Assembly (NCBI RefSeq): GCF_048593235.1
Contig: NC_133621.1
Span: 204,435,238-204,499,237 of the forward strand
Direction: 5' to 3'
Source of the DNA: Sminthopsis crassicaudata
Lineage: Eukaryota
DNA length: 64,000 bases
Below are positions 1,150 to 61,876 of the stretch, one piece after another. The stretch's first letter is position 1, and each line of letters starts with the position of its first letter. The notes beneath the pieces were generated by a model. That model saw only the letters and a list, made by a program, of their open reading frames with translations. It did not search any database and was not told where the DNA came from. A program made the position numbers and the translations under genes.

Positions 1150-1258
1150 AGTCAACTAGACTGATTCCATTGTAGCTCTCCATGTCATTATCTTTCAGAA
1201 CTTCAGCAAAGTCACTACCATCAAGAGGAAAAGAACCCAGAAGGAGAACCTTCCTCAT
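1150..1258 (-). pseudogene. LYZ: Lysozyme C paralog P0, exon 1 only (rest lies left of the window); damaged signal peptide, probable pseudogene
   Basis: Reverse complement reads ATG AGG AAG GTT CTC CTT CTG ... GAC TTT GCT GAA GTT CTG AAA GAT AAT GAC ATG GAG AGC TAC AAT GGA ATC AGT CTA GTT GAC T|GTAAGT, giving MRKVLLLGSFPLDGSDFAEVLKDNDMESYNGISLVD. It aligns to exon 1 of copy A with 27 nt missing. The upstream ~350 bp and intron 1 are homologous to the other copies. Confidence 0.85.
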
Positions 1259-1311
1259 GTCCAAATAACCAATCAAACTGCTCCAAGTGCTAAACCTGAG
1301 CTGGACTTCGA

Positions 1312-1340
1312 TATGTAACTTCTCTCTCAAGTTCCTCTTC
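1312..1340 (-). promoter_or_regulatory. P0 proximal promoter: ETS/PU.1-like GAAGAGGAACT conserved; TATA-like box mutated to TTACATA
   Basis: agttcctcttc at 1330-1340 is identical to 9311-9321 of copy A. tatgtaa at 1312-1318 replaces tatttaa. Confidence 0.6.
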
Positions 1341-1584
1341 TTATTTGTCTGAAGGCCCCATTTTCCTAGTTATGTAGAAATGAAGATCTATTTATAATGA
1401 CATTTTCTCTCTTTCCTTGAAGGTAGAAGACTTGGCGCATGGAAGGGCATGGAGGTTTCCCTCTTTTCCTGAAGGCAGAATGAGAGTGGGAGGAACAGTT
1501 TCTGCTTTCTGAGTGTTTGAGCAATTAATGAATCTGATTTATTAGCAAACAAAAGTGTGGTAGAGGGATGGCCCAGATAAGCCA

Positions 1585-2560
1585 GTCAATAAACATTGAT
1601 TAAGCATCTGCCACCCGGACACTGTGCTGAATGTTAAGAGCAATAACAGAGTAAAATGTTCTTGCCAAAGGTCTAACTAATGCTAGTTCAAAGCCGCTTC
1701 TTTTGTGATCTCGGACATATCTGTTCCATCGGTAAACAATTTATCTTTATCTTCAAGCAACCGATGATTAAGGTTGTTTGCACATATGACTCTGCTCTTT
1801 GATGGAGATCGGCTCCTCTATGCTTCATCTCTGTAGTGAGAGGCAGAGTTGGCAAGAGTTGGGAAGAGGGGAAATCTTTGTATTTTAGTTTCCAGATTGA
1901 GAGAAGGGACATGGATTTCCAGCTGCTCTTCAGGGAGAGGTCTTTGAGAGGGAGAAAGACTGGGAGGAAGTAAACAAGGAGAGAGAGTAAGAATTAGATG
2001 GATAGGTAAGGAGAGAGTGAAGCTTAGGGAAAGAGAGAGAGGATGATTGATAATCAACTGAAGAAGGGAAGGAATGGAACCAAAGTACAAATAAAGGGTT
2101 TGGTATTGGTAAGGAGAAGACTGACTTTTTCATCAGAAATAGGAATAAAGAAGGAAAAAGTGAGGGGAACATGACATGGAGTTTTGGGACACAGAAAAAT
2201 GGAGAAGAGAGAGTTTATGGTGATTGACTTCTACTTTCTCAGTAAAGTATGAGACAATTAATTACCTTTGCTGAAATGGAGAGAGGAGGAGGCAGTGTGA
2301 CAATCTTGAGGAGAAAAGAGTAGAGTGAAAACACGTGCTCTAGGAAATGTGAAAGAGAATTAATTTGAGAATTGCTTTACTGTAACAAGAACCTAGTTGA
2401 GATTAAATCACATCTATATGTGGATTGAACCCAGTCAATGTGATCATGTAACTTCTGCTAGCAATAAGCATGTCAGTAGGAGTGAAGAAAGCAAGATGGG
2501 AGGATTCAGGTGAGGTTGTAAACCAAGGATGTATGGAGTAAAGATAAGGTGAAGAACTTA
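1585..2560 (-). mobile_element. Ancient L2 LINE fragments (antisense)
   Basis: Starts with an L2-type end (caataaacattgattaagcatctg), followed by purine-rich antisense ORF2-like sequence. Highly decayed; boundaries approximate. Confidence 0.5.
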
Positions 2561-4482
2561 CAAGAATGTCTAAATTCCTTTTCTGTATTTTATTTTCTCT
2601 AGGTCTCTGTGTTCTCCGTGACTTCTAGAACATGGAAGGAGAATGGGAAAATAAAAGTCTAAGATAAAAGAAGGTTTGCTAATGGTCAAATAAAGGAAAA
2701 TTCAGGAAGGAAGCAGGAAACAGCTAACAGAATGAGATTGGGGGGTAAGAGGGAACATCCTAAGATAGGTAAGGATGAGAAAATGGGGACAGAGAGCAAG
2801 GAAGAGGGTTGTTTGTTTGTTTGTTTTTTTAAGCAGCTAGGGATTCTGTGTAACTGGGACTAGCAGAAGGGGAGGTAGGATCTGGCAGGTGATAAGACAT
2901 GGGGATATATTTAATGGGGCTCTCACCTTTAAGAGTTTGTGAATAGCATCTTTCAAGTGCTAGGAAAGAACTGAGGTTATGCTTGCAGGCAGTCCCTAAG
3001 TACAGAACCAATAACAAGAAATCCAGCTGAGAATTTTTACCTTGATTCTTCAAGTAGAGGCCTGTGGTTGAAGGCTATGATCCTCGAAGCTAGACCCTAA
3101 ATCCATCATATTTTTAGAGAATAAAAGCTGAGAAAAATAAATATAATCTTGAATAATTGAATGAGGATCAAAAGGTCTTAACAGCCTAGAATGTGAGTTT
3201 TCTACTTCACTTATTTTTTATTCTTCCTTATCTGGTCTGTTCAATTCATATGATTTTAAGATTTGCAATACATATATGTATGCCTATATCTATATTTAAA
3301 TATATATCTATAGTTATATCTATTTATCAATTCACCTATCTACATCATTCACAATTACTTTTCTACTTTTAAACCAGTAACAAATAATTTAGATGACTCC
3401 TATTTCATAATGCAGTTGGTTTCATCATTTAAAAATTATTTCCCTTAACATTTTGGATAATTTTCTTTCTCCAGATTTTGCTATTATTTTATCTAGATCT
3501 ATAAATCAACCCTGGTATTTTGATTGATATCGTATCATATATGTATATTAAGTTAGGTAATATTTTCATTTTTATTAAATAAGCATGGCCCAGACATGAG
3601 CATTGAATATTTCTCCAGAATTACAATAGTTCTTTTTTTTTTTTTAACTCATTCAGTGACCATTTATTAAGTTCCAGATATGCCAGATCATGTACTGAGC
3701 ACTGTGCATACAAAAAAATGCAAATGATCCCTGCTCTCAAGGAGTTTACATTCTAACCTGAGAGACATTATATAAATTATACATAAGGTATATACGGAAT
3801 AGTTGGGAAGTAACTTTCCAGTGGAAAGCTTTAGCAGTTGTGGATCGAAGGGGAAGGGAAAAAAGGCTAGCAAAAAATGGTATTTGAGCTGTTTTGAAGG
3901 AAGTCAGGGAAACTAAATTAGGATTAGATCTGTGCAGAATAGCACATTTATAGAAAGAAATTAGAGAAATATGTCATAATTTGGTGCATTTTTGTTCATA
4001 AACATATCCGTGTATATCTATGTATATTTATTTCAGGTATGATTCTTGATTATAAACAATCTCTTCACACTCTGCATTATGTAGTTGCCTAATAAAGATA
4101 CACCCCCTTCTCCTTTTTAGTACTGCCCATAGATTTCTGAAGAGACATAGATGACAGTTCTTGCCAGGTCAGGATTTCACTTTATGTACATTCCCTTTAA
4201 GATGTAGTCATGTTTTTTCTAGAACTGAAGAATTTCTGAACTCATGATACTAAATTGTCTCTTTACACTCAAACCTGAAATCATGGAGCTTTGTGTGATA
4301 ACTAGACAAGTTTCCTTTCAGTTTGAGTGTAACTAAAAATCTAAAAAAGGTAGTCAGCCATAAAACTATTATTAAACATTGTCTTTTGAAAACTAGTTGT
4401 TTCATTCATTCTGTGTCAATTTTGTTAGAGAAAATGATTTTTTTAAGAGAGAAGAATATAGTGTTTGATTTAAAAAAGCATC

Positions 4483-4488
4483 TTTATT
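4483..4488 (-). other. Candidate polyadenylation signal AATAAA of LYZ copy A
   Basis: tttatt on the + strand, about 45 nt past the stop codon. The equivalent site is degraded in copy B. Confidence 0.6.
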
Positions 4489-4531
4489 AGCAGAGGAAGC
4501 ATATTGAGTTGTAGGACCTAAAGGTGGCAGA

Positions 4532-4598
4532 TTACAGATGGCAACCTTTCAGGTATCCTGAAAGGTCTTTTCCTTGGCATTTGTTTTTCCAGGCCACC
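4532..4598 (-). CDS. LYZ: LYZ copy A exon 4 ([21 protein letters not shown])
   Basis: Acceptor tttctctacag|G GTG GCC TGG; stop TAA at 4532-4534. Confidence 0.97.
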
Positions 4599-7500
4599 CT
4601 GTAGAGAAAGGGAAATGAAACAATGAAAAACTGAGCAAAATTAGCCTTGGATAAATGTTCATTTTTAACATGGAGTTATAAAGTGATATTTATGAAATAC
4701 AATTACTATTTCAAAGAGAAAAGAAAAAACATAAAAAGAAAATGTCTCATTAGGCCTTAGTTTTCTCATTTTTTTTAAAAAAAAATCAGGCTATTGGATT
4801 TTAAAGATTTCTATTAGGTTTGAACCTTTGTGATTCTTAATGTTGAGGCAACCAATAAATGAATCCACTATTCAATGATCTGACCAAATTAGACTCTTTA
4901 ATATCTCCTTTTCTTGTTCCAATGTTTTCTATCTCTCGGCTTTTGGAAGCTAAGATTAATTTCTCACCTTTGCATGGCAATTTTCAATATATAAAATCCC
5001 CCTTCTTCAAGGCTCATCCCATAATACCTCCTTCCTGAAACTTCTCAAGATGCACCAAGTAAAAGTGATCCTTTCAAATTTCAACTATTTTTAAAATCTG
5101 CATGTCTCCTTTACATCTCACACATTTTGCTCTGTTTCATAACCCTTTGAATACTTGTCTTTTTTTTCCTATTTGGTTATAAGCTTCTTTGGAGATAGAG
5201 TTTATTTTAAGCATCTAATATAATGTTTTTTGTTACTGAACAAAATTTTGCAAACTAATTTGACTGAATACATTGCCCAATGCTGAAGAAATCAATTCAA
5301 AACATATTAATAATATCTGAAGGAGCATTCTTCCACCCTACCCAACCTAATTCCTTATTATTATTATTATATAATTATATTTTATTTATTATTATATAAT
5401 ATTATACATATATAAATATTATTATAGTATTTATACCATGCTTTCAATCTAGGATTTCTGACTTCTCACTCCCTCTCATTCCCCCCAAATAATCAGTTGC
5501 CAAGGCATCCCTTTTCTACCCCTGTAATATTTTTTGTGTATAGGGGAGAAAGGGATCTTCTCTAATCTGACTCTTCCAACAGCTGGTTGCAGGTTCTCAT
5601 CACTACACACCTGGATTATAACAATATGATCTCCCCATTCCAGTCTCTCCTCCATTCAATTGTCAAAAAGTTCTTCCTAAAACATAAATCTCACCATGTC
5701 ACCTCCTATTCAATTAACAGCTCCAGTGGTTCCAAATTACCCCCAGGATTACTCTGTTGGCATTCAAAGCCAAATCCATTTTGCCAGTTCTCTTATACTT
5801 TACACTCTTTGCTGTACTCTATGTCCAGTGGCACTAGTTTCCTAACTGTGCCTTGAATCAGACATTCCATCTCTCAATTGAACACATTTTCTCTGACTCT
5901 CTCCCTTGCCAGAACTCTCTCCCTCCTCTTTTCTGCCTCTCGGGTTCTCTCACTTCTTCAAATCTCAGCTAAAGCTCTACCTTCTGAATAAATCAAGATA
6001 AACTGCATCTAAGCTCTAGATTGCATGAATCTAAGTTTTATTGTATGGGACTATTAACATGAGTCCCATAATGACTTATTGCCTATCAAATAACATTCAA
6101 ATTCTACTTGGTTTTCTAATCCCTCCCACCTGGTACCTCCCAATTCTTTCAGCCTCATTTCATCACATTTAAGTGGTTCACTTCTATTCCTTTCTGTTCC
6201 CAGGATGCAATCTGTTGCTGTTCTCATCACATTCTACTCACACGGTTGCTGATGCATAGAATAGTTCATTTCCAATCATTTGATCTTATCCCTGAAGAAT
6301 CCAATTTAACCACCATTTCTTTCAGTGAACTCCAGAATCAACAATGATTTCTCCCCTTTGTACTTGGTTTGCATCTCACTTATGGACTTTGGGATCATTC
6401 TGAATTATAACTATCTGGATTTATGGCAAATCCATCTGCTAAATCCTAGGCTGCATGAGGTCAGGGACTGTGTCTTATTGAATATTTTTTCTCTCAACAC
6501 CTAGTGCAGTGCTCTATACACAGTAAATAGGTAATAGGTAGTCTTTTAAAAAGCTTGAAGATCTATAGAGTCATGTTGCAAACTGTTTTGATTAAAATTT
6601 TAAATTGTGCTCCTGCCTGTTATTTCATCTCTAAGTTATTGGGGTTTTTTGGGGGGCCGTGGGGACATGATTCCTGGCCACAAAAACAGATTGGCAGAAA
6701 AAAGCAGCACCACAAAAACCCTAGGATCCTTATTAGGAGAGGTTGACTCATAGAATATTGTTTAAAATAATTGCTAATAGAAATAAATCCAACTAGTTTA
6801 GTTGCTGCTAAGCAATACACAACAAAATGGACTTTATCTTTGAATAACCTCAGGTCATCCCTGAAAGAAATGAATTATTCTTTATAGTGATTGAAAACAT
6901 ACCATGCACTAATGCCTTGTTGATCTACAATCTTTTTTGCACAATTTACTGTTTTCACGAGGTTATCTTCCTCCAGTTCTGAAACAGAAATGAAAGCAGA
7001 CATAAGTAAGTTTCAAGTTCATTTTATCTAAAAGGACCAATCCTCCTAGTTAAGGAAGAAGAAACAATATTATAAGATTATTTTCCTAAATTCCAGATAA
7101 ATGAGACTGCAGTCAAGAAAGGAAAGGCCTGTGCTCTCATTCATCTCCTCCAGACCTGACTTGAATTTCTGTATCACTTTAAGGCTTACAAAATACTTTT
7201 CTCTCTATAACCCTGTAAAGCAGCCAATTTTCAGATGAGAAAATTGGGACTCAGAGAGGAGATGTGACTTGTCCATGGTAACACAAATAGTCAGTGTTAA
7301 TGTCAGAACTTAAAGTCAGATGTCTTGACTCCAGGCTCAGGGTGCAGGGACCATGACCGCAGGTTGAGGGTCATCCATTTAAAAAATCAGGAATAAAGTC
7401 AAACATGAATGGACATTCTGTTTCATTTTTTTTTTTCCTTTCAAATAAATAAGGGCTGTGAAGTTGTTGTGGTGGTGGGTGACTCATTCTTAACACAAGC

Positions 7501-9240
7501 TAAGAACAGATGAAGACTAGGGAGCTGAGTTGAAGTGACTTCTGCAGGAGCACTCAGCTGTCAGGTAGTGAGTGATAAAGACTGACCATACAGAACAGCA
7601 GCTTAGAAAAAACACATTTTGGCTCACTGGTCACAGAAATCAGTCAGGGATAGAAGTAGCACCGTTACATGCCCCACGTATTAATTCTGGAGCTGAAAGA
7701 CCAGGTTCAAATCTCACCTTGGACTCTCCCTCTCCCTGTATGACCTTGGACACTCTCACTTCCCCAGACCTCACTTTAACCACTTGGGAAGTGAGAGTGA
7801 TGGATTAGAGACGGCATCAAGAGATCTCTACATCTATGATCCTATAATGTGGACTAAAAGGATCAGTCTGAATCACTGAGAATTTCCATTACAGACATTC
7901 CCCAGCCAAAGGGGGAAGCTAATTTAGGTAGCTACCTAAAATGAAAGGAGAATTTGAAGAATTGGGTCCCTTCCTTCTGAATGATCTTGTACCAGTCAAC
8001 AACAGGACTAAGAAATGATACTCTTCTGAGAAGAGATGGCCTTTTTTTAGTTTGGGAATGATGAGAGAGGAACTGGGAAGGTTAATTAGAAATTGAGTTT
8101 CTTTTTGGCTTTCTAAAGCAGCTTCCCTGTGTAAGTGTTTAATCTGCATATTATGGACCTTGCTGAGCAGAGTTGCTGTGCCCCAGATCCCAGAGGTGGC
8201 TCTTACCTGAGCACTTGTAGCCACACCCATTGGTTGCATGTGGGGTCTTGCCATCATCACACCAGTAGTGACTGTTGATCTGCATTATCCCATAATCAGT
8301 GCTTTTATCTCCAGGGTTGTAGTTTCTTGCTTTGGTATTAAAACTGCTCTCCCACCTTGCCAAGCACACCCCTGTGAAGAATTCATTTAAAGAGGGATTA
8401 TTTCATATATTATCATATTTATCCAGGAAAACCAATACTCTTGAATTGATTAATCATCCTTCATTACTGATAGTCTATAGATGGTGCTTTGAATAAATTA
8501 CAGGTTCCAGAATCAAGAAGACCTGAGTTTAAATTCAGCCCTCAGAGACTATGTGTGTGACCCTGAGCAAATTGCTTAATCCTATCAGCCTCAGTTCCTT
8601 ACCGGTTTAAAAAAAAAAAAAAATTACCTGTAAAAGGAAATGGCAAAGCACTCCAGTGTCTTTGCCAAAACAAAACAAAACAGAACAAAACAAAACAAAA
8701 CAACAAATTGAGTAGCTTAGAGTTGGACACAGCTGAAATAACTCAACAACAGCAAAGCATTATTTTCTGGGTTTTTTTAATCGAGGAAATTGGGGTTAAG
8801 TGACTTGCTTATTATATATCTAGTAAAGTGCCTGAAGTCAAATTTGAACTCAGATCCTCCTAAACTCTGGGGCCAGTGTTCTATCCACTGCTTCATTCAG
8901 CTGCCCCAACAAAGCATTACTTTTGCCAGTGTGAGCTGATGGTTAAGTTTTCACTGAGCTTTTTAACTTTTGCAAATAGGCAAACATCCAAAGGAAGAAA
9001 TTGAAAATGAAAGAAAACAAATATTCATTCCTCTGAAACTGTCACCCCCATTTTTAGCCCTCCTCTCCTTAGGGTCTGTGGAGATCACAGGAGATCAAAC
9101 TTACAGTTAGCCAGGCTGATTTGATGGTAGTTAGCCAAACCCAGATTCTTTATTCTTCTGGCAAAATCACATCTCTCCAAGATCTCACCATGGACTACCA
9201 TGGGGAGGAAGATGAATCCCAGAAGAAGGAGTACCTTCAT
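4532..9240 (-). CDS. LYZ: Lysozyme C (c-type muramidase), copy A, intact: complement(join(4532..4598,6903..6978,8207..8371,9105..9240)), 147 aa
   Basis: Exons of 136+165+76+67 = 444 nt with all introns GT-AG. Protein: [147 protein letters not shown]. It has an 18-aa signal peptide, 8 Cys, catalytic Glu (WES) and Asp (TDYG), and the canonical 4-exon LYZ structure. Confidence 0.98.
5420..6010 (+). mobile_element. L2 LINE 3' fragment in LYZ-A intron 3
   Basis: L2-type motifs (cacctggattataac, aaatctcaccatgtcacc, aaatctcagctaaagctctaccttc). Confidence 0.6.
6903..6978 (-). CDS. LYZ: LYZ copy A exon 3 ([26 protein letters not shown])
   Basis: tttctgtttcag|AACTGG...GCATG|gtatgt; 76 nt. Confidence 0.97.
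8207..8371 (-). CDS. LYZ: LYZ copy A exon 2 (catalytic exon)
   Basis: ttcttcacag|GG GTG TGC...TGC TCA G|gtaaga; 165 nt; matches ORF 8151..8369. Confidence 0.98.
8490..8905. mobile_element. Two adjacent CORE-SINEs in LYZ-A intron 1 (MIR/Mar1-like + at ~8490-8760; WSINE/Mar1-like - at ~8770-8905)
   Basis: CORE motif gacctgagtttaaattcagcc...tgtgtgaccctgagcaa, then an inverted copy (ggggttaagtgacttgc...cagctgcccc). Confidence 0.75.
9105..9240 (-). CDS. LYZ: LYZ copy A exon 1 (signal peptide + N-terminus)
   Basis: ATG at 9240-9238; GCT AAC T|gtaagt donor; 136 nt. Confidence 0.98.
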
Positions 9241-9292
9241 GTTGCCTGAGTAGTCAAGCTGCTCCAACTGTTGAGGCTGAATCAAGCCCCAG

Positions 9293-9321
9293 TATTTAAC
9301 TTCTCTCTTCAGTTCCTCTTC
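9293..9321 (-). promoter_or_regulatory. LYZ-A proximal promoter: TATA-like TTAAATA (9293-9299) and ETS/PU.1-like GAAGAGGAACT (9311-9321)
   Basis: Position ~55-80 nt upstream of the ATG. The purine box is perfectly conserved in P0. PU.1/ETS control of lysozyme promoters is established in other vertebrates. Confidence 0.7.
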
Positions 9322-9619
9322 CTTGCTTTTTGAGGGCTCCACATGCTGGCTATGCAAAAATCAAGATTTGTTTATTGCTACATTTCCCTATTTCCCCTGA
9401 AGGCAGAAAACCTGGCACATAGTATGGGAAGGTACCTCTCCCTCTAGTCCAAGGTTCAATTAAGGTGACAGGACAGGGACAGATTCTGCTTTCCTGGTGT
9501 AACACCAGACTTACCCAACATTAGTGGAATTGATTTACCAGTAAATCAAATTGTAACAGAGGAAGAAAGACTCAGATAACAGGCTAAAATCCACCTTCCT
9601 CAACACTAATGCCAATCAG

Positions 9620-9770
9620 TCATCCTGATCTCTATCTGGCCAGTGGACCCAGATGGCTCTGGAGGGGAAAGTACAGCAGGTGACCCTGCACAGCCTCCCT
9701 CACTTAAATCCAATTCCTTACCTCCCTGATGTCATGGTCCTCTTGGAGAACAACAGTAACGATATATAAG
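9620..9770 (+). mobile_element. Marsupial SINE 3' part (Mar3/WALLSI-like)
   Basis: ggacccagatggctctggagg...cctcacttaaatccaattc...gatgtcatggtcctctt resembles RTE-related marsupial SINE ends; family name from memory. Confidence 0.5.
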
Positions 9771-9976
9771 ACAAGAGAGTCTGAGAATCACAGAATTTCA
9801 GAGTTAGAATGGAATCCAACTCTTTCCCATCCTATGTTCAAGTGGAATCTTCTCTGCAACCTACATGATGAATAGTCAAATAATTTTTCCTGGAATCCAA
9901 ATCTATTTTTAACAACTTTGAAACTTTTATTTACTTCATCTGAGAAAAATTGCACATTCATAAATTACAATCCTTA

Positions 9977-10519
9977 TGTAATATCAGTTATTAGTATTAC
10001 CTGTTTATGGGCCAGAACTCTGAACTTGAAACAAAGGATTCTTACAAGGTACTAAGTCAGTGGAATTGATAGAAACAATATTTATCTAATTTACATGGTT
10101 CAGTATGATTGATCTGATCCTACATCTCCTTATAGGGCCAGAACTTGAAACAAGGCACTAAGTGGAATTGAGGAGACAATGGTTAAATCTATTTTCCATT
10201 GATTTAATCTTACAACAAATAGTGGTTTCCTAGTGATACAATGATTGCTGTATACTCAGTGTGTAGGATATAAGTTAGAAGCCTCAGCCAGGGAGATTCA
10301 GAAGCCAGAGAAGGCAGGCGGGAGCTCAAGCTTTCGGAAACAAGGAGAGAGGAAGGCCTCCAGAAAAACTAGCTGAGCCCCCAGTGAAGAAGACAATAAA
10401 GGATTTGGACCTTAACCCCTGGCTACTCTGGTGGTGATTGATCAACTGAAACAAAGGCTGCTCCAGAGACCCCAAGAAAACCTCAACAGAGAACATTACA
10501 TTTTAGAGAGAACATTACA
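9977..10519 (+). mobile_element. Solo LTR ~0.7 kb upstream of LYZ-A
   Basis: TGTAA...TTACA termini, internal gatataa and AATAAA (gacaataaagg), internal short duplications. Flanks ctta/atta are an imperfect 4-bp TSD. Confidence 0.7.
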
Positions 10520-48830: not shown

Positions 48831-50171
48831 AAGTATCAAAAGAGAAAAGGGACTGTGTACTTAGGTTAATTCAGAGATCCATTGCTCCCAAGCCCAACAG
48901 CTTTGGGGCAGACTGTTGGGAAAGGAATCAGGAAACCAAGTCCACACTTTTCCCCTTTACCTCTTTTCCTGACAGGGACCCATCTGAATTGTCTTTACCC
49001 ATTATGAAAGTTCTCAATAAGAGCTGGCCCCACTTTGAAGCCATCACTGATGTCCAGTGACCTGTTGCTACCTTGACCTATTTGTAATTTCTTTGTCCTT
49101 AGTTTTGCTTCCTTAATCAGGGTAAGTGAAGAATTTCTTTTCAAAAGTTCCAAAGGTGTAACAATACCTGAAGCCTTAAAGGACTGCAGAATATAAAGGC
49201 ATTCCCTCTAATTAACTAATTAGTGAAAGTGGTATCTTATCTCTTAGAAAAGAATTCTAGGTTTTTAAACAGGAGCCAGAAATTCTGGCCATAAACTGGC
49301 CAGAAATTCTGGCCAAAACATAAAAGTTGAACACTCCCTCAGAATTAGAAAGTTTTCCTAATAATGAATAGCCCTGAATTCCTGATATAAATCCCCCTGC
49401 ATGATCTTTATGATATATTGCTATAATCTCTTTGCTGACATGAGCAACAAAGTGAAAATAATCAGTCAGGACACAGAATGTCTTGTTCATGGAAGAACAA
49501 GGGTGTAGAAGAATATGGAGGGCTGGGAGGAGTAATGTATAAGGTAGAGGAAAATTGGAAAGCTAGTAGAAGAGCTTTGAAAGCGAAACAGAAAATTTAT
49601 ATTAATAACAACAGAAAAACAAGGACTACCATCTAAATAATGCTTTAAATTTAAACAGGACACCCTTTTAAGGTTAATATGCCCTATTAACATGATCTCC
49701 ATTAATTCTTAAGTCTAGGCAAAGAACAAAATGGTAGGTTAAGCATTGATTTGTAGCATTTCCCAATATCCAAAGTGTCAAAGCTTATACTGAAAATTTA
49801 ACCATCAGCATACTCCATCAAAGTAATACTTCACTGAGTTAAGTCATTTAAATTGTGTCCAACTCTCAGTTACCTTCATTGGGAATTTAATGACAAAGAG
49901 AGTGAAGTGATTTGTTATTTCCTTTTCCTTTTCTAGCTCTTTTATATATATATATATATATAGAACTGAATTAATTGACTTGCTCACACAGCAAGTGTTT
50001 AAGGCTGGATTTATACTCAGGTCCTCTTTATTTTGGTGTCAGGGATCTAACCAATGTACCACATACACTATATCAGTTATGAAGGAGGAATAATCAATTC
50101 AAGAGTATTGGTTTTCCTGGGTAAATATGATAATATATGAAATAATCTTTCTTTAAATGAATTCTTCACAG

Positions 50172-50336
50172 GGGTGTGCTTGGCAAGGTGGGAGAGCAGT
50201 TTTAATACCAAAGCAAGAAACTACAACCCTGCAGATAAAAGCACTGATTATGGGATAATGCAGATCAACAGTCACTACTGGTGTGATGATGGCAAGACCC
50301 CACATGCAACCAATGGGTGTGGCTACAAGTGCTCAG
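50172..50336 (+). pseudogene. LYZ: LYZ-C exon 2 (catalytic Glu/Asp intact)
   Basis: ttcttcacag|GG GTG TGC...TCA G|gtaaga; matches ORF 50174..50392. Confidence 0.95.
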
Positions 50337-51061
50337 GTAAGAGCCACCTCTGGGATCTGGGGCACAGCAACTCTGCTCAGCAAGGTCCATAATATGCAGA
50401 TTAAACACTTACACAGGGAAGCTGCTTTAGAAAGCCAAAAAGAAACTCAATTTCTAATTAACCTTCCCAGTTCCTCTCTCATCATTCCCAAACTAAAAAA
50501 AGGCCATCTCTTCTCAGAAGAGTATCATTTCTTAGTCCTGTTGTTGACTGGTACAAGATCATTCAGAAGGAAGGGACCCAATTCTTCAAATTCTCCTTTC
50601 ATTTTAGGTAGCTACCTAAATTAGCTTCCCCTTTTGGCTGGGAAATGTCTGTAATGGGAATTCTCAGTGATTCAGACTGATCCTTTTAGTCCACATTATA
50701 GGATCATAGATGTAGAGATCTCTTGATGCCGTCTAATCCATCACTCTCACTTCCCAAGTGGTTAAAGTGAGGTCTGGGGAAGTGAGAGTGTCCAAGGTCA
50801 TACAGGGAGAGGGAGAGTCCAAGGTGAGAATTGAACCTGGTCTTTCAGCTCCAGAATTAATACGTGGGGCATGTAACGGTGCTACTTCTAGCCCTGACTG
50901 ATTTCTGTGACCAGTGAGCCAAAATGTGTTTTTTCCAAGCTGCTGTTCTGTATGGTCAACCTTTATCACTCACTACCTGACAGCTGAGTGCTCCTGCAGA
51001 AGTCACTTCAACTGAGCTCCCTAGTCTTCATCTGTTCTTAGCTTGTGTTAAGAATGAGTCA

Positions 51062-51566
51062 CCCATTTACATGAACTGATGCTGAGTGAAATGAGCAGGA
51101 CCAGGAGATCATTTTATACCTCAATAATGATACTGTATAAGGATGTATTCTGATGGGCGTGGCCCTCTTTAACAATGAGATGAACCAAATCAGTTCCACT
51201 AGAGCAGTAATGAACTGAACCAGCTACACCCAGTGAAAGAACTCTGAGAGATGACTATGAACCACTACAAAGAATTCCCAATCCCTCTATTTTTATCCGC
51301 CTGCATTTTTGATTTCCTTCACAGGTTAATTGTACACTATTTCAAAGTCCGATGCTTTTTGTACGCAAAATAACTGTATGGACATGTATACATATATTGT
51401 ATGTAATTTATATTTTAACATATTTAGCATGTATTGGTCAACCTGCCATTAGGGGTAGGGGGTAGGGGGAAGGAGGGGAAAAATGGGAACAAAAGGTTTG
51501 GCAGTTGTCAATGCTGTAAAATTACCCATGCATAAAAAGCTATAATTTAAAAAAAAAAAAAAAAAA
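51062..51566 (+). mobile_element. L1 3' end in intron 2 of LYZ-C, absent from copy A
   Basis: 12-bp TSD aagaatgagtca; poly-A; empty site at ~7480-7490 in copy A. Confidence 0.93.
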
Positions 51567-51933
51567 AAGAATGAGTCAACCACAACCACAACAACTTCAC
51601 AGCCCTTATCTATTTGAAAGGAAAAAAAAAAATAATGAAACAGGACTTTATTCTTGATTTTTTAAATGGATGACCCTCAACCTGTGGTCATGGTCCCTGC
51701 ACCCTGAGCCTGGAGTCAAGACATCTGACTTTAAGTTCTGACATTAACACTGACTATTTGTGTTACCATGGACAAGTCACATCTCCTCTCTGAGTCCCAA
51801 TTTTCTCATCTGAAAATTGGCTGCTTTACAGGGTTATAGAGAGAAAAGTACTTTGTAAGCCTTAAAGTGATACAGACATTCAAGTCAGTTAGGTCTGGGA
51901 GGAGATGAATGAGAGCACAGGCCTTTCCTTTCT

Positions 51934-52095
51934 CTCTCTCTCTCTCTCTCTTTTTTTTTTTTTGAGGCTGGGGGTAAGTGACTTGCCCAGGGTCACACAG
52001 CCAGGACGTGTTAAGTGTCTGACATCAGATTTGAACTCTGGTCCTCTGGAATTCAGGGCTGGTGCTCTACACACTGCCCCACCTAGCTGCCCTTG
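51934..52095 (-). mobile_element. WSINE1-like SINE in intron 2 of LYZ-C, absent from copy A
   Basis: 14-bp TSD ggcctttcctttct. Confidence 0.92.
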
Positions 52096-52241
52096 GGCCT
52101 TTCCTTTCTTGACTGCAGTCTCATTTATCTGGAATTTAGAAAAATAATCTTATAATATTGTTCTTCTTCTTTAACTAGGAGGATTGGTTCTTTTACATAA
52201 AATGAACTTGAAACTTATGTCTGCTTTCATTTCTCTTTCAG

Positions 52242-52320
52242 AACTGGAGGAAGATAACCTCGTGAAAGCAGTAAATTGTGCAAAAAAGGTCGTAGATCAA
52301 CAAGGCATTATTAGAGCATG
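52242..52320 (+). pseudogene. LYZ: LYZ-C exon 3
   Basis: ttctctttcag|AACTGG...AGAGCATG|gtatgt. Confidence 0.95.
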
Positions 52321-52355
52321 GTATGTTTTCAATCACTATAAAGAATAAATCATTT

Positions 52356-52498
52356 GGGGCAGCTAAGTGGTGCAGTGGATAGAGCACCAGCCCTGAAGTC
52401 AGGAGGACCTGAGTTCAAATCTGATGTCAGACACTTAACACTTTCCAGCTGTGTGACTCTGGGCAAGTCACTAATCCCAATTGCCTCAGGGGAAAAAA
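52356..52498 (+). mobile_element. WSINE1-like SINE 35 nt after LYZ-C exon 3
   Basis: ggggcagctaagtggtgcagtgg...cctcaggggaaaaaa. Confidence 0.9.
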
Positions 52499-52722
52499 TT
52501 CAAGAATGAGCATGTTCAATGAATGAGATAAGGTGTTCAAAGATAAAATAAAGTCCATTTTGCTGTGTATTGTATTGCAGTAACTAGGCTGGTAGGAGAT
52601 ATTCCTAAAATTCAAGAATGAGCATGTTCAATGAATGAGATAAGGTGTTCAAAGATAAAATAAAGTCCATTTTGCTGTGTATTGTATTGCAGTAACTAAC
52701 TAGGCTGGTAGGAGATATTCCT
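52495..52722 (+). repeat. Direct tandem duplication of 112/116 bp
   Basis: aaaattcaagaatgag...gagatattcct occurs at 52495-52606 and 52607-52722, identical apart from a 4-nt insertion. Confidence 0.95.
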
Positions 52723-53314
52723 ATTAGCAATCATTTTAAACAATATTCTATGGGACAACCTTTCCTAATAAGGATTGTTGTTATGGTGCTGCTTTCCTTA
52801 TTGTACAGAAGGACAGTATATCAATGCAGTAATTATCCAGTAGGGAAATACAATATTGGAATTGTCCATTACAAAGCAATCAAGTAATCTTATAAGTCCT
52901 TTTTCTGACTCTACTGGAAATGGCCCTTTCCTAGGGGCCTGCAATGTCCATTCTGGCCATCAGGAGGTGCTCAGCTAAAAGATTCTGAGGCTTCTCTGCC
53001 CACCCTTGGACTGTGTTCTCAGCACAAAGCATGGCATTAAGCCCAAGCTGTCACAGTTCAAACTATGGTCTGATATGAAACATTGCTCAAAATATTAAAA
53101 TATGAGGTCTGTGGCCTCTACTACTTCATGGGTCCCTATACCTTTGGGGTTTTGTTCTTCCAATTTATTGCCCACTACCCTCATTGATCAAATGATTATG
53201 GAGTTTATTTCTCACATTTCATAAATAAATAAAATTAAAAATTTTCATAAATAAAAAATTCATAAATCACATTTCATAAGCATTCATGTATATAAAAAAT
53301 GAACATTTATTTAA

Positions 53315-54135
53315 CAGTGTTATGGTAAGCCTCTTTTTTTGTTGTTTGTTTATTCTTTTAGCCTACTTCTTGATTTGGGATTTTATGTTAGTTAAGCTTT
53401 GCTCATTTCTTGGAGACATTGTTTGGCCTGGGCTTCTGATCTTTTTGTGGATCAGTTTGAGTTCATGAAAGTTTTCATTGCTTCCAAAGTGATGTGATCC
53501 CGGAAGTTTATGATCTTTCTGCTCTGGGCATTACAAATTTCAGAGCTAGGTTTGTGTCTTTTGGCTTTGTGAAACTTTTAAGTTTCAGTAGATTACTATT
53601 GGACTCAGTCACGGTTAGTTTGCTGGGAGATTCTGAAGGTTCACACTGAACTGCTAGCTCTCTTTTGGTCTTGGTTGGCTATTCTGCATCCTGCTATACT
53701 GCAGGCTTATGCACTGGGTTAGAAATGAATTATATTCTGCTCCTGCTCTCACGAAAGGCTAGAACTGAATCAGTGCTCTGCTCCTATTCTTGGAATCACA
53801 CAGCTAAGTTTCCAGAATTTGTTTTTTGATCAATATTCATCTAGGGCTCCAGGCTTGAATTTGGACTCCTCTTCACCTTGAATCTGTCACTCAGAATTGG
53901 GTAATGGGTGATAAAGTTGGCAGATGGCCCCTGTTCTGTATCTGAGCACTGGAATATTCCTGGCCAGCTCCAAACTCAGTATCTGCAGACCTGTCTTCCT
54001 AAGCTTCCTTGGGCTGGAAAAATGACTCACTGTGACTTCACTTCTCCTATCAGAATTTTGTCTGGAACATTTTCTAGATTGTTGTGAAAGAAGTATGTTG
54101 AGAGAACTAGGCAAAAAATGCTTCCTTTCATTCTG
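53315..54135 (-). mobile_element. Old L1/HAL1-like 5' region, antisense, at the point where LYZ-C homology ends
   Basis: T-rich antisense LINE 5' character; family not determined. Confidence 0.45.
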
Positions 54136-55131
54136 TCAGAGTTTCTTGAGGACAGGCATGTGTGGTTCCAGATTCACTTTAGGTAAAACAAGTAGAGAAA
54201 GACTGTAGAAGAAGCAAATATGTGAGGGAAGTTGGCTCCTCAACATGTCTATGATTTTAAGCTTGCCTTCCTAGAGATTCCTGAGAATTTTCTTTGAGTA
54301 AGATTTGGCCTTTTCTTTTGATTGAACTGGATCCCAGTTCATTTCCATCTAAAACGAGTTCATTCATTATTGTATATTTTCTGATTTGCATTTGTTTGGA
54401 TAAATTGCATTACTTGCTTTTGACTATTTAGGACAGTATTTAATGTAACTAATAATGGGAAGAGATCAAATTAGTAAGCTTAAATTAAAGGATTAGCAAT
54501 CAAGAAAGGGAGTTTATTCTGGACCAGATTTTATTTCTAAATTCTTTCCATCTGAGGAGGATCAAGAGATGGGTGAATGAAGGAGAAAGTGATATCCAAA
54601 TTCAAGCCCAGAGCCCTAGGTGAATATTGAGCAAAAAACAAATTCTAGAAATTTAGCTGTATGATTCCAAGAATCATTACTCAAGTAATGGACTTGATGG
54701 CCTTGTAAAAGATGAAAAAGGCAGATACAAAGTTGAAAGAAGTTAATATGTAATATGTTTTCAGAAATAGCATATTTTTACAAAGTGTTTAAAGAAATTA
54801 AAAATATTTCTAGTTAATTAATTAATGAGATAAAGAACCTTGTGGAATTTAAGGAGAAAGTAGAACCACAATATGCTGTTACTGAGTGGTTGGTTCAAAA
54901 GAGAAATGAGAGCAGAATTTATAGTCTGCACAATCTAAATAATGAGCAGAAGAGAAAAACTGAAATCTGTGATAGGAAACCTCCCTATAGAAATAAATGA
55001 GGGAACAATATATAGGAAACGCAAAATAGAAAATACAAAGATGTGAAGTAAAATCTAGAATTAGAGAAACAAGAAAAAAAGGGAAGGATTTCAGTAATTG
55101 GAGAAGAACAATTCTGAGTCTACCGAAGTAC

Positions 55132-58100
55132 TGATAAGTATTTCTTGCCCTGAGGCAAGCAGGGAAGGGCGCTGATGGGGATTAATTTAATCTTATTGTA
55201 GTCCCACCCTTTGTGGAGGTCTTGGGTAGCTCTACTTTACTGTGTCCAGTCAGAAATGAAGTAATATCAAACCTCTGCGGTTAAATTTCTCCTATAAATC
55301 TTCCTATGGCCCATGCCATCTTTGCTGAATCCCTTTTGGGTTAGCTTATCATGGCATTCTGTCTTGTGCTGGCTGTCTTTTTCCTCCCCCTTGCCCATAT
55401 CTCTCATCCCCTCATCATACTTCATGGTGTCTTTCTCCTTCTTATAAGTAACTCTTTTAGGGTGCTAAACTCCTCTATGGATTTAGCCTGTTCCCACCTC
55501 ATAGGGTATTCCCTTTCTCCTGGTTAATTGTGAATTCCACTGGAGAACTTGTTTTTTCCATTATTAATGGAAATAATTTCCTTTTGCTAACTATATGCTC
55601 TCCCAAATCTGTTTCATATTTATCATTTCTGTTGTTTATTGTATCCCTTCATTTTATCTGAACCTCTTCTAAATAAATCTACCTTTTGCCAAAGAGTGGC
55701 CATTTTGAATTCTTCACATGACTGAACCCCGACATTTGGTACCAATTTATCTAAATCTCATCATTTGGTGCTAAACCCCAAACACATCATCTGGTGCTCA
55801 AAACCCACTGGTATTCTTCTTGTCAAAAGGTAAGAGATTCCCACATTTTAGTCCCATACCTCCACATAGTGAGAGCCCTTGTTTTCTCCATTTTTTTTTT
55901 TCTCATTTAGCATAATTGGGTAATATGTAATTCAACTTATTCAAGGGATGCCCTGAATCAAGTTACTTTGTCATTTCTGGTGTGGACCCCACACTAGATC
56001 TGTGGGATTTGGCTACAAGGATGGGACAGGAGTGGGTGAGGCTGCTTGAGTGTAGGACATTTTTTAGGGATGTTTGTGTTTCCCAATATTACAAAGGAGA
56101 GCTAATGTAACATCTGGCCATCTAGGATTTAAAATGCACACTGTGTTGTCTCTGCCTGTCTGTCCTCTCTAAGTCTTTCTATGACAGTCTCCTTTCTGTT
56201 TGTGCTAAAAACTAACCTGCATTTTCTTAAAAGTTAACCTTTGAGAGAGAAAAATAACCTTTAGCCTTCTGTCCCTTAAAGAGGTTTGTGGAATGGCTAA
56301 ATCAACACCTTGACTTGAAGATTAGGTTGTGCTTGTTAAAACTATTCCTCCAGTCTGCCTTTCCAATGAAGGATGGGCTCTCCAACATCCCCCGCCCCAT
56401 GTCTTGGAGTCAGTCTCAGTTTCTCTTTACATTGGGTCTCTCTGTGTCCCTGACTCCAGAGTCCTAAAATTCTCCTCATGAGACTCCATGAGGGTGTGAG
56501 GGTGAGAAGGGTGTGGGTTTTTTTTTCAGTTCTCCCTAGATGGAAGATGCCAGCAGTCTTCCCCAGCCCTCTCTAGACACAAACTTGTATCTCCACTTGG
56601 CTTGGATAGGTCCAGGTGGCTCACGTAGCACTTCAAGATCTTTTCCTCTTCCCTCCATCTTTAATGGAAGTTGGGAAGGTAGAGAAAAGATAGCCCTAAA
56701 ATTCTAGAATATAATCTCTCCACATGGTTTTGGGGGAGATCAGATTGTTGCCATTTTGCCCTCAGGCACCATCTAGAAAAACTGTATCTCCATATCAAGT
56801 CTCAATTTACTGCCACTTAAAAATTTTTAGGGCTCTAAGAGAACTAATTTGAATGTTGGAAAGTTTCAAAGTTGGGGCCTATACAGGAAAAAACCCGTCA
56901 TTCAACAAGTTTCTCTCAAAGATGCAGTTTTAAATTTGTGTGTTTTTAAATAGGAAATCTGATTCTACATTGTATGAGACAACTACTATTAAATGGCACA
57001 TGCTAAAATTGTGAACTTCTTTACCCTAAAATAAGATTTTAAAGATATGTGTCCATTATTCTTCTTTAATATTGAAATATAACTATTGGAAATTTAAATC
57101 TGTGTTTATGCAAAGTTCTCTGGTAAGTTAATTTAAAGAGGGCACATGTTTGTATATTTTCTAATTAGATGAAATAAATTTAAGGTGCTATGTTGTTTTC
57201 TGAATCATATATTGTGCAATTTTAAAAATCGTATGAGCTATACCTTAAACTTTTGTCAGTCCTGATGGACTTGTGGTATAAGTTTTGTGATGTTTCACTG
57301 AAAATTATTTAGCTATCACTATGTTCTGAATTTTAAGATTGTCTTGTTAATTTAGCCCCTTTTAAAAAAAAAGATTTACTTAAAGAGACAGAATGGAAAA
57401 GTATAAAGGATACATCCTGACCCCCTTCTCGTTAGCAAGGTGAAGCTTGCAAGATCATCAGCCCTAGGAAAAAAGTTTAATATTAGAGCTAAAATTCCCA
57501 TCAAACCTTCCTTCATGTTACAATTTGGCTATCAATTCTGAAAATTCTTGATTAGGATTTTTGGAAGTTATCTGACATTGGGGTTTGAAAACTGTATGCT
57601 AGTTATTTGCATAATTTCATTATTTTATTGGCTTTGGAATATTAGGACATAATCCTCCTTTTCTCCCTTACTAAGTGTGGAGGGCTTGGCTTTCGTCTCC
57701 CCCCCAACACTGGTTAGGGGAGGTGGAAAGAAGCCTATTCATTTGTGCTCATCCCCTCATTGAGCTCCTTGCTACTTGAGTAAAATGTCTTAATTTTTGA
57801 TTTGTTTCCATCATTTAAAGGTATAACACCACATCTCTAGTGTGGTTGTTTATCTCAGAGCAAAAAATTTGTGTAATGTTGACCATCTACTTAGATAAAG
57901 ATACTGCATCAAAGATTCTACTGCTTAGCAATGCAAGGAACTTTTGTGAGAAGTTTGTTAGATATATTCCAAAACTCATTAGTTCTACCATGATTTCTAT
58001 CTGCCTTCAGCAAATCATTTTATAAACACTTATTTAGTGCATCATGGTCTCATTGTTTAACCAATATATAACCAATATCATCTGTAGCTTTCTTAAAATG

Positions 58101-59828
58101 CCTAAAGCAAGATTTTAACCTGATAGTTTTTCTTTTTACATTTAGTTTTGGCTGTTCCCTATAGGTCTTTCATCCTCTGTACAGTGGCAAAATGAAACCC
58201 CTTCTCTTCATCTGCATGTGAAAAGCATGGCATGAGAATGCTTGCCACCACATTAGCCCTGGGGACTATAATTAATAATACTTCTTTGAGTTTGAATTCA
58301 GTTATGGACCATTAAGTTAGAAAACGCTTCATCTCAGAGAACTTCTCAAAAGGCTCAGGTAGAGGTTGGTTGGTTTGTATCTGGGGAAAAAGGAGTTTGG
58401 ATGGTGGCTTTTGAACTCTAGTTGAGGTTAAATCATTCTAACTTGATTTCCCAATTATGTTCCTTTTTTAAAAAGGATGATTCCCATCTAATATTGGAGT
58501 TTGGCAATAGGGTAGTATTGTTAAAACATGTGTGTCCTTCATTTGTGATTTGTAACTGAAGTCAAACAGAGCTAAGGATGCTTTGTCCTGTTGTAATTAT
58601 GTCCCTACGTTTTTCTCTTACAGCAAACTTTCCTATTCAGAACAAGTGGTCAGCTTAAAAGCCATGAGCAAAATCCAGGTATTCAAGATCTTGCTGTTTT
58701 TCATCTGAAATGTGTAAATTATTGGATAAGATGAATATCTGGCCACTCCTGGTACCTATTATCTCCTCATTTTGTCCGTAACCTTTTCTCCTAAATAAAC
58801 CTACCTTTTACCAAAGGAAATGGCCATTGTAAATTCTTTACATGACTGAACTCCAACATTTGGTGCCTCAACATGTTCTCTTCAAATCTACTGCAATACA
58901 CTGCCTCTCATCTGTAAAAGAAAGACTACTTTATTTGTATTAATCCCCTGCCTGGGGTCTTATATGGATCAGATGAAATGAAACATTTAAAGCACTTTCT
59001 AAATCTCAAAGTGAATTATTCCTAAAGGGTGAGGCAATGCTAAAGGTTGAGACAGAAAAGGAAACATTTCCTTTATGTGGGAAAGAGACCCTTTATGTGG
59101 GAGGGTCTCTTTCATCAGAAGTCAGGGTGGAGATTGGGTCACTTGCTCAGCCCACCAAGCTCATTAGTTAGAAACAATCCTATGTCTTAGTCTCCTGCTA
59201 TATGATCAAAGGCTAGAGAGGTAAATTTTGGAGGATTAATTCATTAATTCTAAAACAACTGATGTCAAGGAAAAGACTAAATAGAAAGAATGAATAAATG
59301 AATGAAAAATAACTTGTTAGATATTTACTATGCACCAAGCAGAGATAGAAAAACCAAGATGATCCCTGCTCTCAGAGAACTCATACTCTTATACACACAC
59401 AGAGAGAGCCTTGTGCTTTCTCCTCACTCCTTCCCCATGCCTCACGGTGTCTTTCTTCTCATTCCCCCATATTTCATGGTGTCTTTCTCCTTCCTATGGC
59501 TAACTCTTTTAGGGTACTAAACTCCTCTATGGATTGAGTCTGCCAGTTTTGGAGTATTTCCTGGTTAATGGTGAGTTCCACTAGGAAACTTGTCTTTTCC
59601 GTTGTTAATTGTTGAAACCCCTTTCCTTGCTAATTATATGCTCTCCCAAATCTATTTCATATTTACTATTCCTGGTGTCTATTGTATGTCTTCAATTTGT
59701 CTGTATTCTCCTAAATAAATCTACTTTTTGCCAAAGAGAAAAGCCATTGTGAATTCTTCACACAACTGAACCCCAACATTTGGTGCCATTTGCATCTCAT
59801 CATCTGGTGCTATATCCCAAACACATTA
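55132..59828 (+). mobile_element. Decayed ERV complex: LTR ~55132-55789, non-coding interior, LTR 3' part ~58745-58880, partial LTR ~59410-59828
   Basis: Three copies of ctaaataaa.ctacc.tttt.ccaaag...tgaac.cc.acatttggt; tctggtgc PBS-like start after the first LTR; no intact ORFs. Confidence 0.7.
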
Positions 59829-61734: not shown

Positions 61735-61876
61735 TTTTTTTTGCTGAGGCAATTGGGATTAAATGACTTGCCCAGCATCACACAGCTAGGAAGTGTTAAG
61801 TGTCTGAGATTAAATGAACTCAGGTCCTCTTGACTTCAGGACAGGTGCTCTACCCATTGTGCCACTTAGCTGCCCT
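61735..61876 (-). mobile_element. WSINE/Mar1-like SINE inserted in an L1 3' tail
   Basis: ttttttgctgaggcaattggg...cacttagctgccc, flanked by a ggaactcaaattttg TSD. Confidence 0.85.

Follow-up and report, generated by a model that had tools for sequence, protein, structure and literature searches.

An intact lysozyme C gene and three probable relics in the fat-tailed dunnart, one relic with clean exons probably attributable to gene conversion

Several lysozyme copies lie close together on both strands of one short piece of dunnart DNA, raising the question of which of them work, and of how a copy of which only two inner exons are found comes to carry those exons open and with intact splice sites. 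The window, i.e., the whole 64-kb stretch of DNA analysed, was scanned by blastn, tblastn and Smith-Waterman alignment, with queries that comprised 23 vertebrate lysozymes and, one by one, the exons of the intact copy A; the product was represented by the database protein P0155, whose sequence equals the translations of the A exons. These scans confirm the four LYZ-derived loci on both strands that had been reported from the letters alone, with A and P0 on the minus strand and B and C on the plus strand, and the same queries find no fifth LYZ-derived locus in the window. The four lie within 52 kb; one is an intact gene, and the other three are decayed or partial. Weak tblastn matches at 406-441, 16085-16132, 58451-58489 and 59257-59277 were judged to be chance after inspection in context. 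The three exon-1 peptides quoted in the original prediction are found for P0 at 1160-1213 (minus), for A at 9115-9168 (minus) and for B at 27799-27840 (plus). The charge contrast drawn between their N-termini is real, but it sets a working gene against relics. Two assembly gaps interrupt the window, at 522-742 and 27344-27691, and its flanks hold nothing recognisable as CPSF6 or YEATS4, as judged by the RS-repeat pattern and by long open pieces.

Copy A (4532-9240, minus) is an intact lysozyme C gene of four exons, whose boundaries, with GT/AG at each intron, are read directly from the DNA. Its coding parts, all on the minus strand, are exon 1 at 9240-9105 (136 nt), exon 2 at 8371-8207 (165 nt), exon 3 at 6978-6903 (76 nt) and exon 4 at 4598-4532 (67 nt, with the stop codon TAA at 4534-4532). 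The exon translations equal P0155, that is XP_074125760.1, the lysozyme C of Sminthopsis crassicaudata, at 144/144 exon-encoded residues, so that the marsupial origin proposed earlier is borne out and A proves to be already annotated in RefSeq as lysozyme C of the fat-tailed dunnart; it is the only Sminthopsis lysozyme C protein on database record. The gene has the structure of its family, four coding exons with exon 2 spanning residues 29-82, and its exon 2 aligns end to end with human lysozyme residues 29-82 (PDB match, E ~1e-24). The Pfam domain PF00062 (Lys domain, C-type lysozyme/alpha-lactalbumin, GH22) matches exons 1-3 of A and exons 2-3 of C, with E-values of 9e-18 for A exon 2 and 1e-17 for C exon 2; the matches of A exons 1 and 3 and of C exon 3 are weaker and fall at the right profile positions. 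The catalytic residues Glu35 and Asp53 are present in A and in exon 2 of C; B has no exon 2, and P0 shows exon 1 only. A encodes eight cysteines and a hydrophobic 18-residue leader, with a pI of 8.4, whereas P0, B and C each fall short of the full set of eight cysteines and a signal peptide. In the tree, A lies within the dasyurid LYZ clade. Its product would thus be a conventional secreted muramidase, with an 18-residue signal peptide and a 129-residue mature chain containing Glu35, Asp53 and four disulfides, and A is probably the only one of the four copies that is expressed.

Copy B (27692-35025, plus) is an old pseudogene with frameshifts, lost splice donors, no exon 2, and a cysteine codon and the stop codon lost. 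The remnant of exon 1 (27692-27861, plus) begins at the gap edge inside signal-peptide codons, where the bases from 27692 on align with A signal-peptide codons 4-12; alignment further reveals ~45 nt of insertions and a 1-nt deletion that shifts the frame, and the donor GT is changed to GG at 27862-27863. The interval 27875-29690 contains no exon 2. In the exon 3 remnant (29686-29755, plus; alignment and tblastn) a 6-nt deletion takes out the Cys codon and the GT of the donor is gone, and in the exon 4 remnant (34960-35025, plus; alignment) a 1-nt deletion shifts the frame, a Cys is changed to Phe and the stop codon is lost. The gap at 27344-27691 ends inside B exon 1, with the B ATG and promoter outside readable sequence; the sequence that borders it on the left looks like the distal end of the repeated X block described below and not like a LYZ promoter, and the quoted B peptide is read wholly from bases to the right of the gap, 107 nt away from it. 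The pseudogene status of B is independent of this gap. Over 3.4 kb of flanks, A and B differ by a K2P of 0.23-0.36, and B would have decayed by point lesions together with loss of exon 2.

Copy C (50172-52320, plus) consists only of exons 2 and 3, both open and with intact splice sites. Exon 2 (50172-50336, plus; Pfam E 1e-17) differs from that of A at a single position (G at 8311 in A, C at 50232 in C, changing Gly to Ala), and exon 3 (52242-52320, plus) differs by four substitutions and one extra codon at ~52300. Exon 1 of C is missing from 47000-50170 and from the rest of the window, and 52321-64000 contains no exon 4, which might sit past a large insertion. Both ends of the copy are marked by junctions. 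On the 5' side (49162-49168, plus), homology to A 10974-10797 is joined directly to homology to B intron 1 (28164 onward), so that C lacks the promoter, exon 1 and the beginning of intron 1; on the 3' side (52795-52864, plus), homology to A (~6701) and to B (~30209) ends ~540 nt into intron 3.

The two exons lie inside a tract, 50094-52355 (plus), that is near-identical to A 8450-6868 and is interrupted by two repeat insertions found only in C (~51066-51566 and ~51934-52095). Mismatches to A amount to 13/973 (1.3%) in the first zone of the tract and 26/589 (4.4%) in the second, compared with 31/109 (28%) and 19/135 (14%) in the flanks, and the observed steps from 28% to 1.3%, to 4.4% and to 14% are each sharp (Fisher p = 3e-23, 3e-4 and 2e-4, respectively). 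Within the tract the exons are no cleaner than the introns (1/165 vs 12/808 mismatches in one zone, 4/76 vs 22/513 in the other), and the exon changes mostly alter amino acids. Because the introns of the patch are as clean as its exons, the pattern argues for gene conversion from A, not for selection, and we infer that this patch of C was overwritten by the working gene. A working, exon-4-less lysozyme-like gene, with an unrecognised first exon, an end by read-through into intron 3 and exons kept clean by selection, is in our judgement very unlikely. The open exons 2-3, the intact splice sites and the in-frame indel would suit such a gene, as would the RefSeq "lysozyme C-like" models of bilby (P0152), in which, as would happen in C, the frame runs on from exon 3 into intron-like sequence and ends there, and of koala (P0217), which also has no normal exon 4. 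Against it stand the absence of an exon 1 in the 3 kb upstream or anywhere in the window, the equally clean introns with mostly amino-acid-changing exon differences, and the loss with exons 1 and 4 of the signal peptide and of all but 5/8 cysteines. The tammar, koala and bilby models moreover look decayed themselves, with intron read-through and with Asp53 lost in tammar and koala, Glu35 in koala and Cys6 in bilby. With the clean exons of C explicable by conversion from A, the different fate of each copy, stressed in the original prediction, does not serve as evidence of functional diversification.

The surroundings of A and C fit the conversion reading. The two lie in collinear inverted blocks, 6701-21550 against 52795-37509, with identity ranging from 67% to 99%; outside the homogenised patches the units differ by a K2P of ~0.14-0.38. 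Besides the A/C tract, a second patch stands out, formed by block X at the distal end of the A unit (19087-21550; 51% G+C) and block X' at the distal end of the C unit (37509-39968), which begins ~0.5 kb past the end of the B downstream flank (36969). X and X' are inverted and 99.1% identical, with a K of 0.009 inside arms at K 0.24-0.38, and a third, diverged copy of X lies upstream of B. Both the A/C tract and X/X' are high-identity tracts with sharp bounds, independent of coding status, and their G+C contents are 0.43 and 0.51, compared with ~0.37. Block X has no long ORF and no Pfam or Rfam match, and was rejected as a CpG island (observed/expected 0.13). Inverted repeats and palindromes, such as those of sex chromosomes, undergo arm-to-arm gene conversion. 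Like them, the dunnart arms are near-identical in patches, which are higher in G+C; unlike them, they are homogenised in only two patches (~1.6 and ~2.5 kb) and are otherwise 14-38% diverged. An element with 0.74-kb direct repeats (K 0.12) at 11489-17428 has no counterpart in the C unit, in keeping with old arms; a search for retroviral domains in it found none, and for this reason we do not offer it as a clock.

Part of this layout might instead be an assembly artefact, the A/C tract, X/X' and a 3.9-kb tandem pair at 39.8-47.2 kb being falsely duplicated or misplaced haplotype sequence around gaps. Two assembly gaps in the window, one of them abutting B, and the three segment pairs that differ by only ~1%, namely those just named, would agree with this, yet we regard it as very improbable: junctions and repeat insertions of its own set C apart, as do flanks 14-28% different from A, the inverted units stay collinear across 15 kb despite low identity, and the divergence of B and P0 is much too great for alleles. 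DNA runs of two separate studies contain most of the C stretch, with 63-90% of its sampled words found.

Copy P0 (1150-1258, minus) is represented by exon 1 only, with its ATG at 1258-1256 and a donor GT at 1149-1148. The exon is open from ATG to donor but nine codons shorter than that of A, a net in-frame loss of 27 nt having removed the signal-peptide cleavage region and Cys6. Homology to the A promoter and 5'UTR reaches ~1509, and 1269-1355 matches a wombat model in 5'UTR-like sequence. No exon 2 is found in 1-1133, a range that includes the gap at 522-742, where exon 2 might be. The statement of the original prediction that one gene is intact and three paralogs are broken thus holds for A, which is intact, for B, which is broken many times, and for C, which has only exons 2-3, whereas for P0 the label rests on a single exon, since the rest of the copy is behind the gap or the window edge. 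With a K2P of 0.46-0.53 to A, P0 may be the oldest relic (K ~0.5). The best tree places its exon outside the marsupial-type clade, with the alternative left unrejected by the AU test (p = 0.45), and dN/dS values of P0 and B are ~0.36, from just 21 and 53 codons. Alternatively, P0 could be the first exon of a divergent, acidic and functional lysozyme-like paralog, with its remaining exons to the left of the window, an explanation that we consider unlikely. Its open frame, good donor and right phase are compatible with this, and acidic lysozyme-like paralogs do exist, e.g., a Gracilinanus lysozyme C-like protein with a pI of 4.3; however, the loss of nine codons has taken with it Cys6 and the site of signal-peptide cleavage, the exon is conserved no better than the adjoining promoter (K 0.46 vs 0.53), and no dunnart protein of this kind is on database record.

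Taken together, the locus is very probably the lysozyme C locus of the fat-tailed dunnart, or of a species very near to it, in which A works, P0, B and C are relics, and the exons of C are clean by A-C gene conversion. The order and age of the events are what we infer, the ages depending on an assumed neutral rate and the divergence between units being uneven (0.14-0.38). P0, B and C would be relics of older duplications, and A, B and C would be copies of a single repeated unit, composed of an X block, upstream DNA, LYZ and a downstream flank, that probably diverged at K ~0.25-0.3, with A and B head to head and B and C in tandem. A later deletion would have removed promoter and exon 1 from the C unit, whose homology ends in intron 3. 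The inverted A and C units would have undergone non-allelic gene conversion, overwriting ~1.6 kb of C in at least two rounds (~4% and ~1% divergence), and the X blocks may have been homogenised likewise. The birth-and-death character proposed for this locus is supported: it holds four loci, several of them intron-bearing genomic copies and some disabled, with A working and the others decayed or partial, and B and C have introns and flanks homologous to those of A. Processed pseudogenes, without introns and with a poly-A tail, do not describe B and C, which carry intron sequence homologous to A introns. A further reading is possible, though we hold it doubtful: the "lysozyme C" that works in the dunnart and in other australidelphian marsupials of Australia and South America may be a marsupial-specific paralog and not the eutherian LYZ ortholog, older than the opossum split and marked by a one-codon exon 3 deletion common to the Gracilinanus "lysozyme C-like" protein; in that case P0 would represent what decay has left of the original LYZ, and the exon-4-less C unit could be old enough to be common to the 131-residue bilby model.

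The extra lysozyme copies of ruminants and rodents are expressed and specialised, in stomach, Paneth cell or macrophage. The ruminant stomach and rodent Lyz1/Lyz2 clusters share with the dunnart locus LYZ tandem duplication and gene conversion among copies (PMC3141428), whereas in the dunnart none of the extra copies is intact and conversion acts on a fragment unable to encode a secreted enzyme. The Lysc1 pseudogenes of primates and elephant resemble C in having exon 1 deleted and later exons recognisable (PMC3141428), but they also have frameshifts and stops, whereas the remaining exons of C are clean, apparently by recent overwriting from the working gene. Closest are the marsupial Lyz loci, LyzA-D (four) in opossum and LyzA-H (eight) in wallaby, which likewise consist of several nearby copies on both strands, many of them incomplete, with concerted evolution suspected (Irwin, Biegel and Stewart 2011, PMC3141428). 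In opossum all four are listed as intact and lie at Mb distances (PMC3141428), in contrast to the dunnart, where a single intact gene is accompanied by three relics inside 52 kb. The dunnart conversion tract and its bounds could be placed with single-base precision, beyond the reach of the 2011 draft assemblies. The claim that such a cluster had probably not been described therefore stands only in a narrow sense: no paper treating the dunnart LYZ locus was found in the literature, but multi-copy marsupial Lyz was published in 2011 (PMC3141428) and A is annotated. The dunnart cluster is an ordinary case of a defence gene family growing and decaying by duplication, in outline already known for marsupials; new here are the placement of A and C in old inverted units and the clean exons of C in a sharply bounded patch. 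A possible link to milk, pouch or myeloid defence is suggested solely by analogy with relatives, where lysozyme C makes up 3.58% of transcripts in devil milk (PMC4715465) and pouch secretions contain lysozyme (PMC5339227).

The locus opens no new question on lysozyme biology. It is a small and tidy case of gene conversion making a dead fragment look alive, cautioning that clean exons should not be taken for evidence of function. As the dunnart is a marsupial laboratory model, its practical value lies in annotation and expression work: only A should be counted as lysozyme C, and C, B and P0 are to be flagged as relics, not as the "lysozyme C-like" proteins that relics seem to be called in other marsupial annotations. 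In short reads from exon 2, A and C are separable at one base only.

Searches with the exons of copy A, as nucleotide and protein, and then with 23 lysozymes from marsupials, other mammals and a turtle, together with Smith-Waterman scans of the window judged against shuffled controls, recovered exactly four LYZ-derived loci beyond chance, the number given in the original prediction. No fifth locus was found in the window by any of these searches, and several weak additional hits, each read in its context, were rejected as chance. The three peptides quoted in that prediction are present at 1160-1213 (minus strand), 9115-9168 (minus) and 27799-27840 (plus), and its birth-and-death reading is correct in kind, with copy A intact, copies B and C decayed or partial, and P0 apparently so. 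The window contains two runs of N, at 522-742 and 27344-27691.

Copy A (4532-9240, minus strand) consists of four coding exons of 136, 165, 76 and 67 nt, with GT/AG at every intron and codons split at the positions usual for lysozyme genes. Its exons 1-3 match PF00062 (Pfam), and over its full length exon 2 can be aligned to human lysozyme, residues 29-82 (E ~1e-24). The exons were compared singly, and the dunnart protein P0155 (XP_074125760.1, 'lysozyme C [Sminthopsis crassicaudata]') stood in for the full product; exon by exon, 144 of 144 residues are identical, which assigns the window to the fat-tailed dunnart or a very near relative, and A is thus an already annotated gene. Its mature chain is 129 residues long and contains Glu35, Asp53 and eight Cys, with a pI of 8.4, and the devil and antechinus orthologs are identical at 130 of 147 positions. 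In A's upstream region, direct repeats of ~0.74 kb (K2P 0.12) at 11489-12220 and 16683-17428 bracket 4.5 kb, and the whole element is missing from the corresponding place of C's unit; because the pieces between the repeats gave no Pfam match, an LTR element is only suspected here.

Self-comparison of the window reveals an inverted collinear chain in which 6701-21550 matches 52795-37509 with very uneven identity. Most blocks of the chain have a K2P of 0.14-0.38, similar to A versus B; K is 0.009 for a 2.46-kb block at the far end of each unit and 0.006-0.05 for the LYZ exon 2-3 region of A versus C. At an assumed neutral rate of 2-4e-9 per site per year, a K of ~0.27 would correspond to some tens of millions of years and a K of ~0.01 to one to three million years. 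The distal blocks, X in A's unit (19087-21550, 51% G+C) and X' in C's unit (37509-39968), are inverted relative to each other and 99.1% identical, and could mediate inversion of the intervening 16 kb. A third, partial piece of X, roughly 75% identical, lies at ~26981-27261, close to the left edge of the gap that precedes B. Block X was rejected as a CpG island (observed/expected 0.13); it has neither a long ORF nor any match in Pfam or Rfam. On the simplest reading, one unit comprising X, upstream DNA, LYZ and downstream flank would be present three times, with A on the minus strand and B and C in tandem on the plus strand, and P0, downstream of A, would be an older neighbour. A SINE-like family of ~145 nt (80-96% identity, both strands) is also scattered through the window, at 15274-15417, 23715-23857, 26345-26495, 30742-30888, 52355-52498, 61724-61876 and, in C's intron 2, ~51950-52093.

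Copy C retains two open exons with intact splice sites, exon 2 (50172-50336, plus strand), which differs from A by one base (Gly to Ala), and exon 3 (52242-52320, plus), which carries four substitutions and one extra codon relative to A. No exon 1 was found in the 3 kb upstream or elsewhere in the window, and the 11.7 kb that remain up to the window end contain no exon 4. At the junction 49162/49168, a homolog of A's upstream DNA (10974-10797) is fused directly to a homolog of B's intron 1, so that C has lost its promoter, its exon 1 and the beginning of intron 1 by deletion; homology to A and B ends near 52864, ~540 nt into intron 3. Of the words sampled from the C stretch, 63-90% occur in the DNA runs that two studies made of one organism, and ~16% in runs of a second organism. 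Just downstream of exon 3, a 112-nt unit is doubled in tandem (52495-52723, 96% match).

The A/C alignment changes in steps, with mismatches at 31 of 109 sites (28%) over A 8560-8451, 13 of 973 (1.3%) over 8450-7476, 26 of 589 (4.4%) over 7475-6868 and 19 of 135 (14%) over 6840-6701 (Fisher p of 3e-23, 3e-4 and 2e-4 for the successive steps), and the 1.3% and 4.4% zones meet at a C-only insertion (~51066-51566). Within these zones the exons are no cleaner than the introns, with 1/165 exon versus 12/808 intron mismatches in the 1.3% zone and 4/76 versus 22/513 in the 4.4% zone, and of the four substitutions in exon 3 three are amino-acid changing. The stepped profile and the equally clean introns argue against purifying selection on C and point to gene conversion between the inverted copies, probably in at least two rounds. 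The converted patches have a G+C of 0.43 and 0.51 versus ~0.37 in their surroundings, which would fit GC-biased conversion. Inside C's upstream region, a 3.9-kb unit is duplicated in tandem (39844-43736 and 43737-47186, K2P 0.013), its first 125 nt overlapping the end of X'; the duplication appears to be of the same age as the youngest A/C conversion tract.

Copy B (27692-35025, plus strand) aligns to A as remnants of exons 1, 3 and 4; exon 2 is absent by Smith-Waterman scan. Exon 1 begins at the gap edge, inside the signal-peptide codons; it has gained ~45 nt by insertion and lost 1 nt by deletion, and its donor reads GG instead of GT. Exon 3, of marsupial-type length, has lost its donor and, through a 6-nt deletion, a Cys codon; in exon 4 one nt is deleted, a Cys has become Phe and the stop is gone. 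Since the right edge of the gap 27344-27691 lies within exon 1, B's ATG and promoter are hidden, and none of the disabling lesions rests on the gap. What borders the gap on the left is not a LYZ promoter but diverged sequence from block X's distal end, so more than the nominal 348 letters may be missing there. Compared with A, the introns and downstream flank of B have a K2P of 0.23-0.36, and B's surviving codons resemble ancestral australidelphian LYZ, with possum and Dromiciops nearest. Intron 3 contains an insertion not found in A (32596-34800) with a 582-codon open frame (32641-34389, plus), whose beginning corresponds to the final part of the reverse-transcriptase domain RVT_1 in Pfam (E 4e-9); the insertion resembles a LINE copy that is fairly young and truncated at its 5' end.

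Protein searches, each seeded with earlier hits, gathered lysozymes from eleven marsupial species, including the only dunnart lysozyme on record, and A falls within the dasyurid LYZ clade (starred in the protein tree). All australidelphian sequences and the Gracilinanus 'lysozyme C-like' protein (pI 4.3) form a clade (support 100/99 and 98/94 in two trees) that excludes the didelphid 'lysozyme C' proteins, which group with the LYZ of eutherians and monotremes. The same split is marked in exon 3 by the deletion of one residue. Comparison of the proteins P0101, P0164 and P0165 with all australidelphian LYZ shows two old marsupial LYZ lineages on the tree, with 98-100% support. P0 is visible only as exon 1 (1150-1258, minus strand), open from ATG to GT donor in the right phase, and ~300 nt of promoter/5'UTR homology; any further exons would have to fall within the 522-742 gap or beyond the window's left edge. 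With 27 nt fewer than exon 1 of A, the visible exon is missing Cys6 and the region of signal-peptide cleavage, and it is not better conserved than the adjoining promoter (K 0.46 versus 0.53), suggesting, as judged from one exon, a decayed or partial copy. In the best tree it lies outside the australidelphian and Gracilinanus clade, nearest didelphid LYZ; a tree constrained to place it within the clade is worse by only 0.57 log-likelihood units (AU p = 0.45), so P0 as the remnant of the original LYZ is no more than a lead.

The suggestion that such a cluster had probably not been described is weak: the dunnart locus is described in no paper found by our literature search, but multi-copy marsupial Lyz was published in 2011, with four opossum genes on both strands, eight wallaby genes, most of them incomplete, and concerted evolution suggested for marsupials (Irwin, Biegel and Stewart 2011, PMC3141428), and A is annotated. 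The possible tie to milk, pouch or myeloid defence draws on the literature for relatives: in devil milk, lysozyme C ranks seventh among transcripts by abundance (PMC4715465), and it is also reported from marsupial pouch secretions and milk (PMC5339227; PMC5054531). The locus is ordinary and of known kind; the one thing added here is gene conversion from A as the proposed explanation of C's clean exons, and the main use of the locus is annotation. The RefSeq 'lysozyme C-like' models P0152 (bilby), P0217 (koala) and P0296 (tammar) either have no normal exon 4 or run on into intron sequence (intron 1 or intron 3). Asp53 is lost in the tammar and koala models, as is Glu35 in koala; the bilby model keeps both catalytic residues and has Trp in place of Cys6. 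All three look like decaying paralogs annotated as coding, and decaying LYZ copies are evidently common in marsupials. The end of the bilby model is what truncation of a C-type unit within intron 3 would produce.
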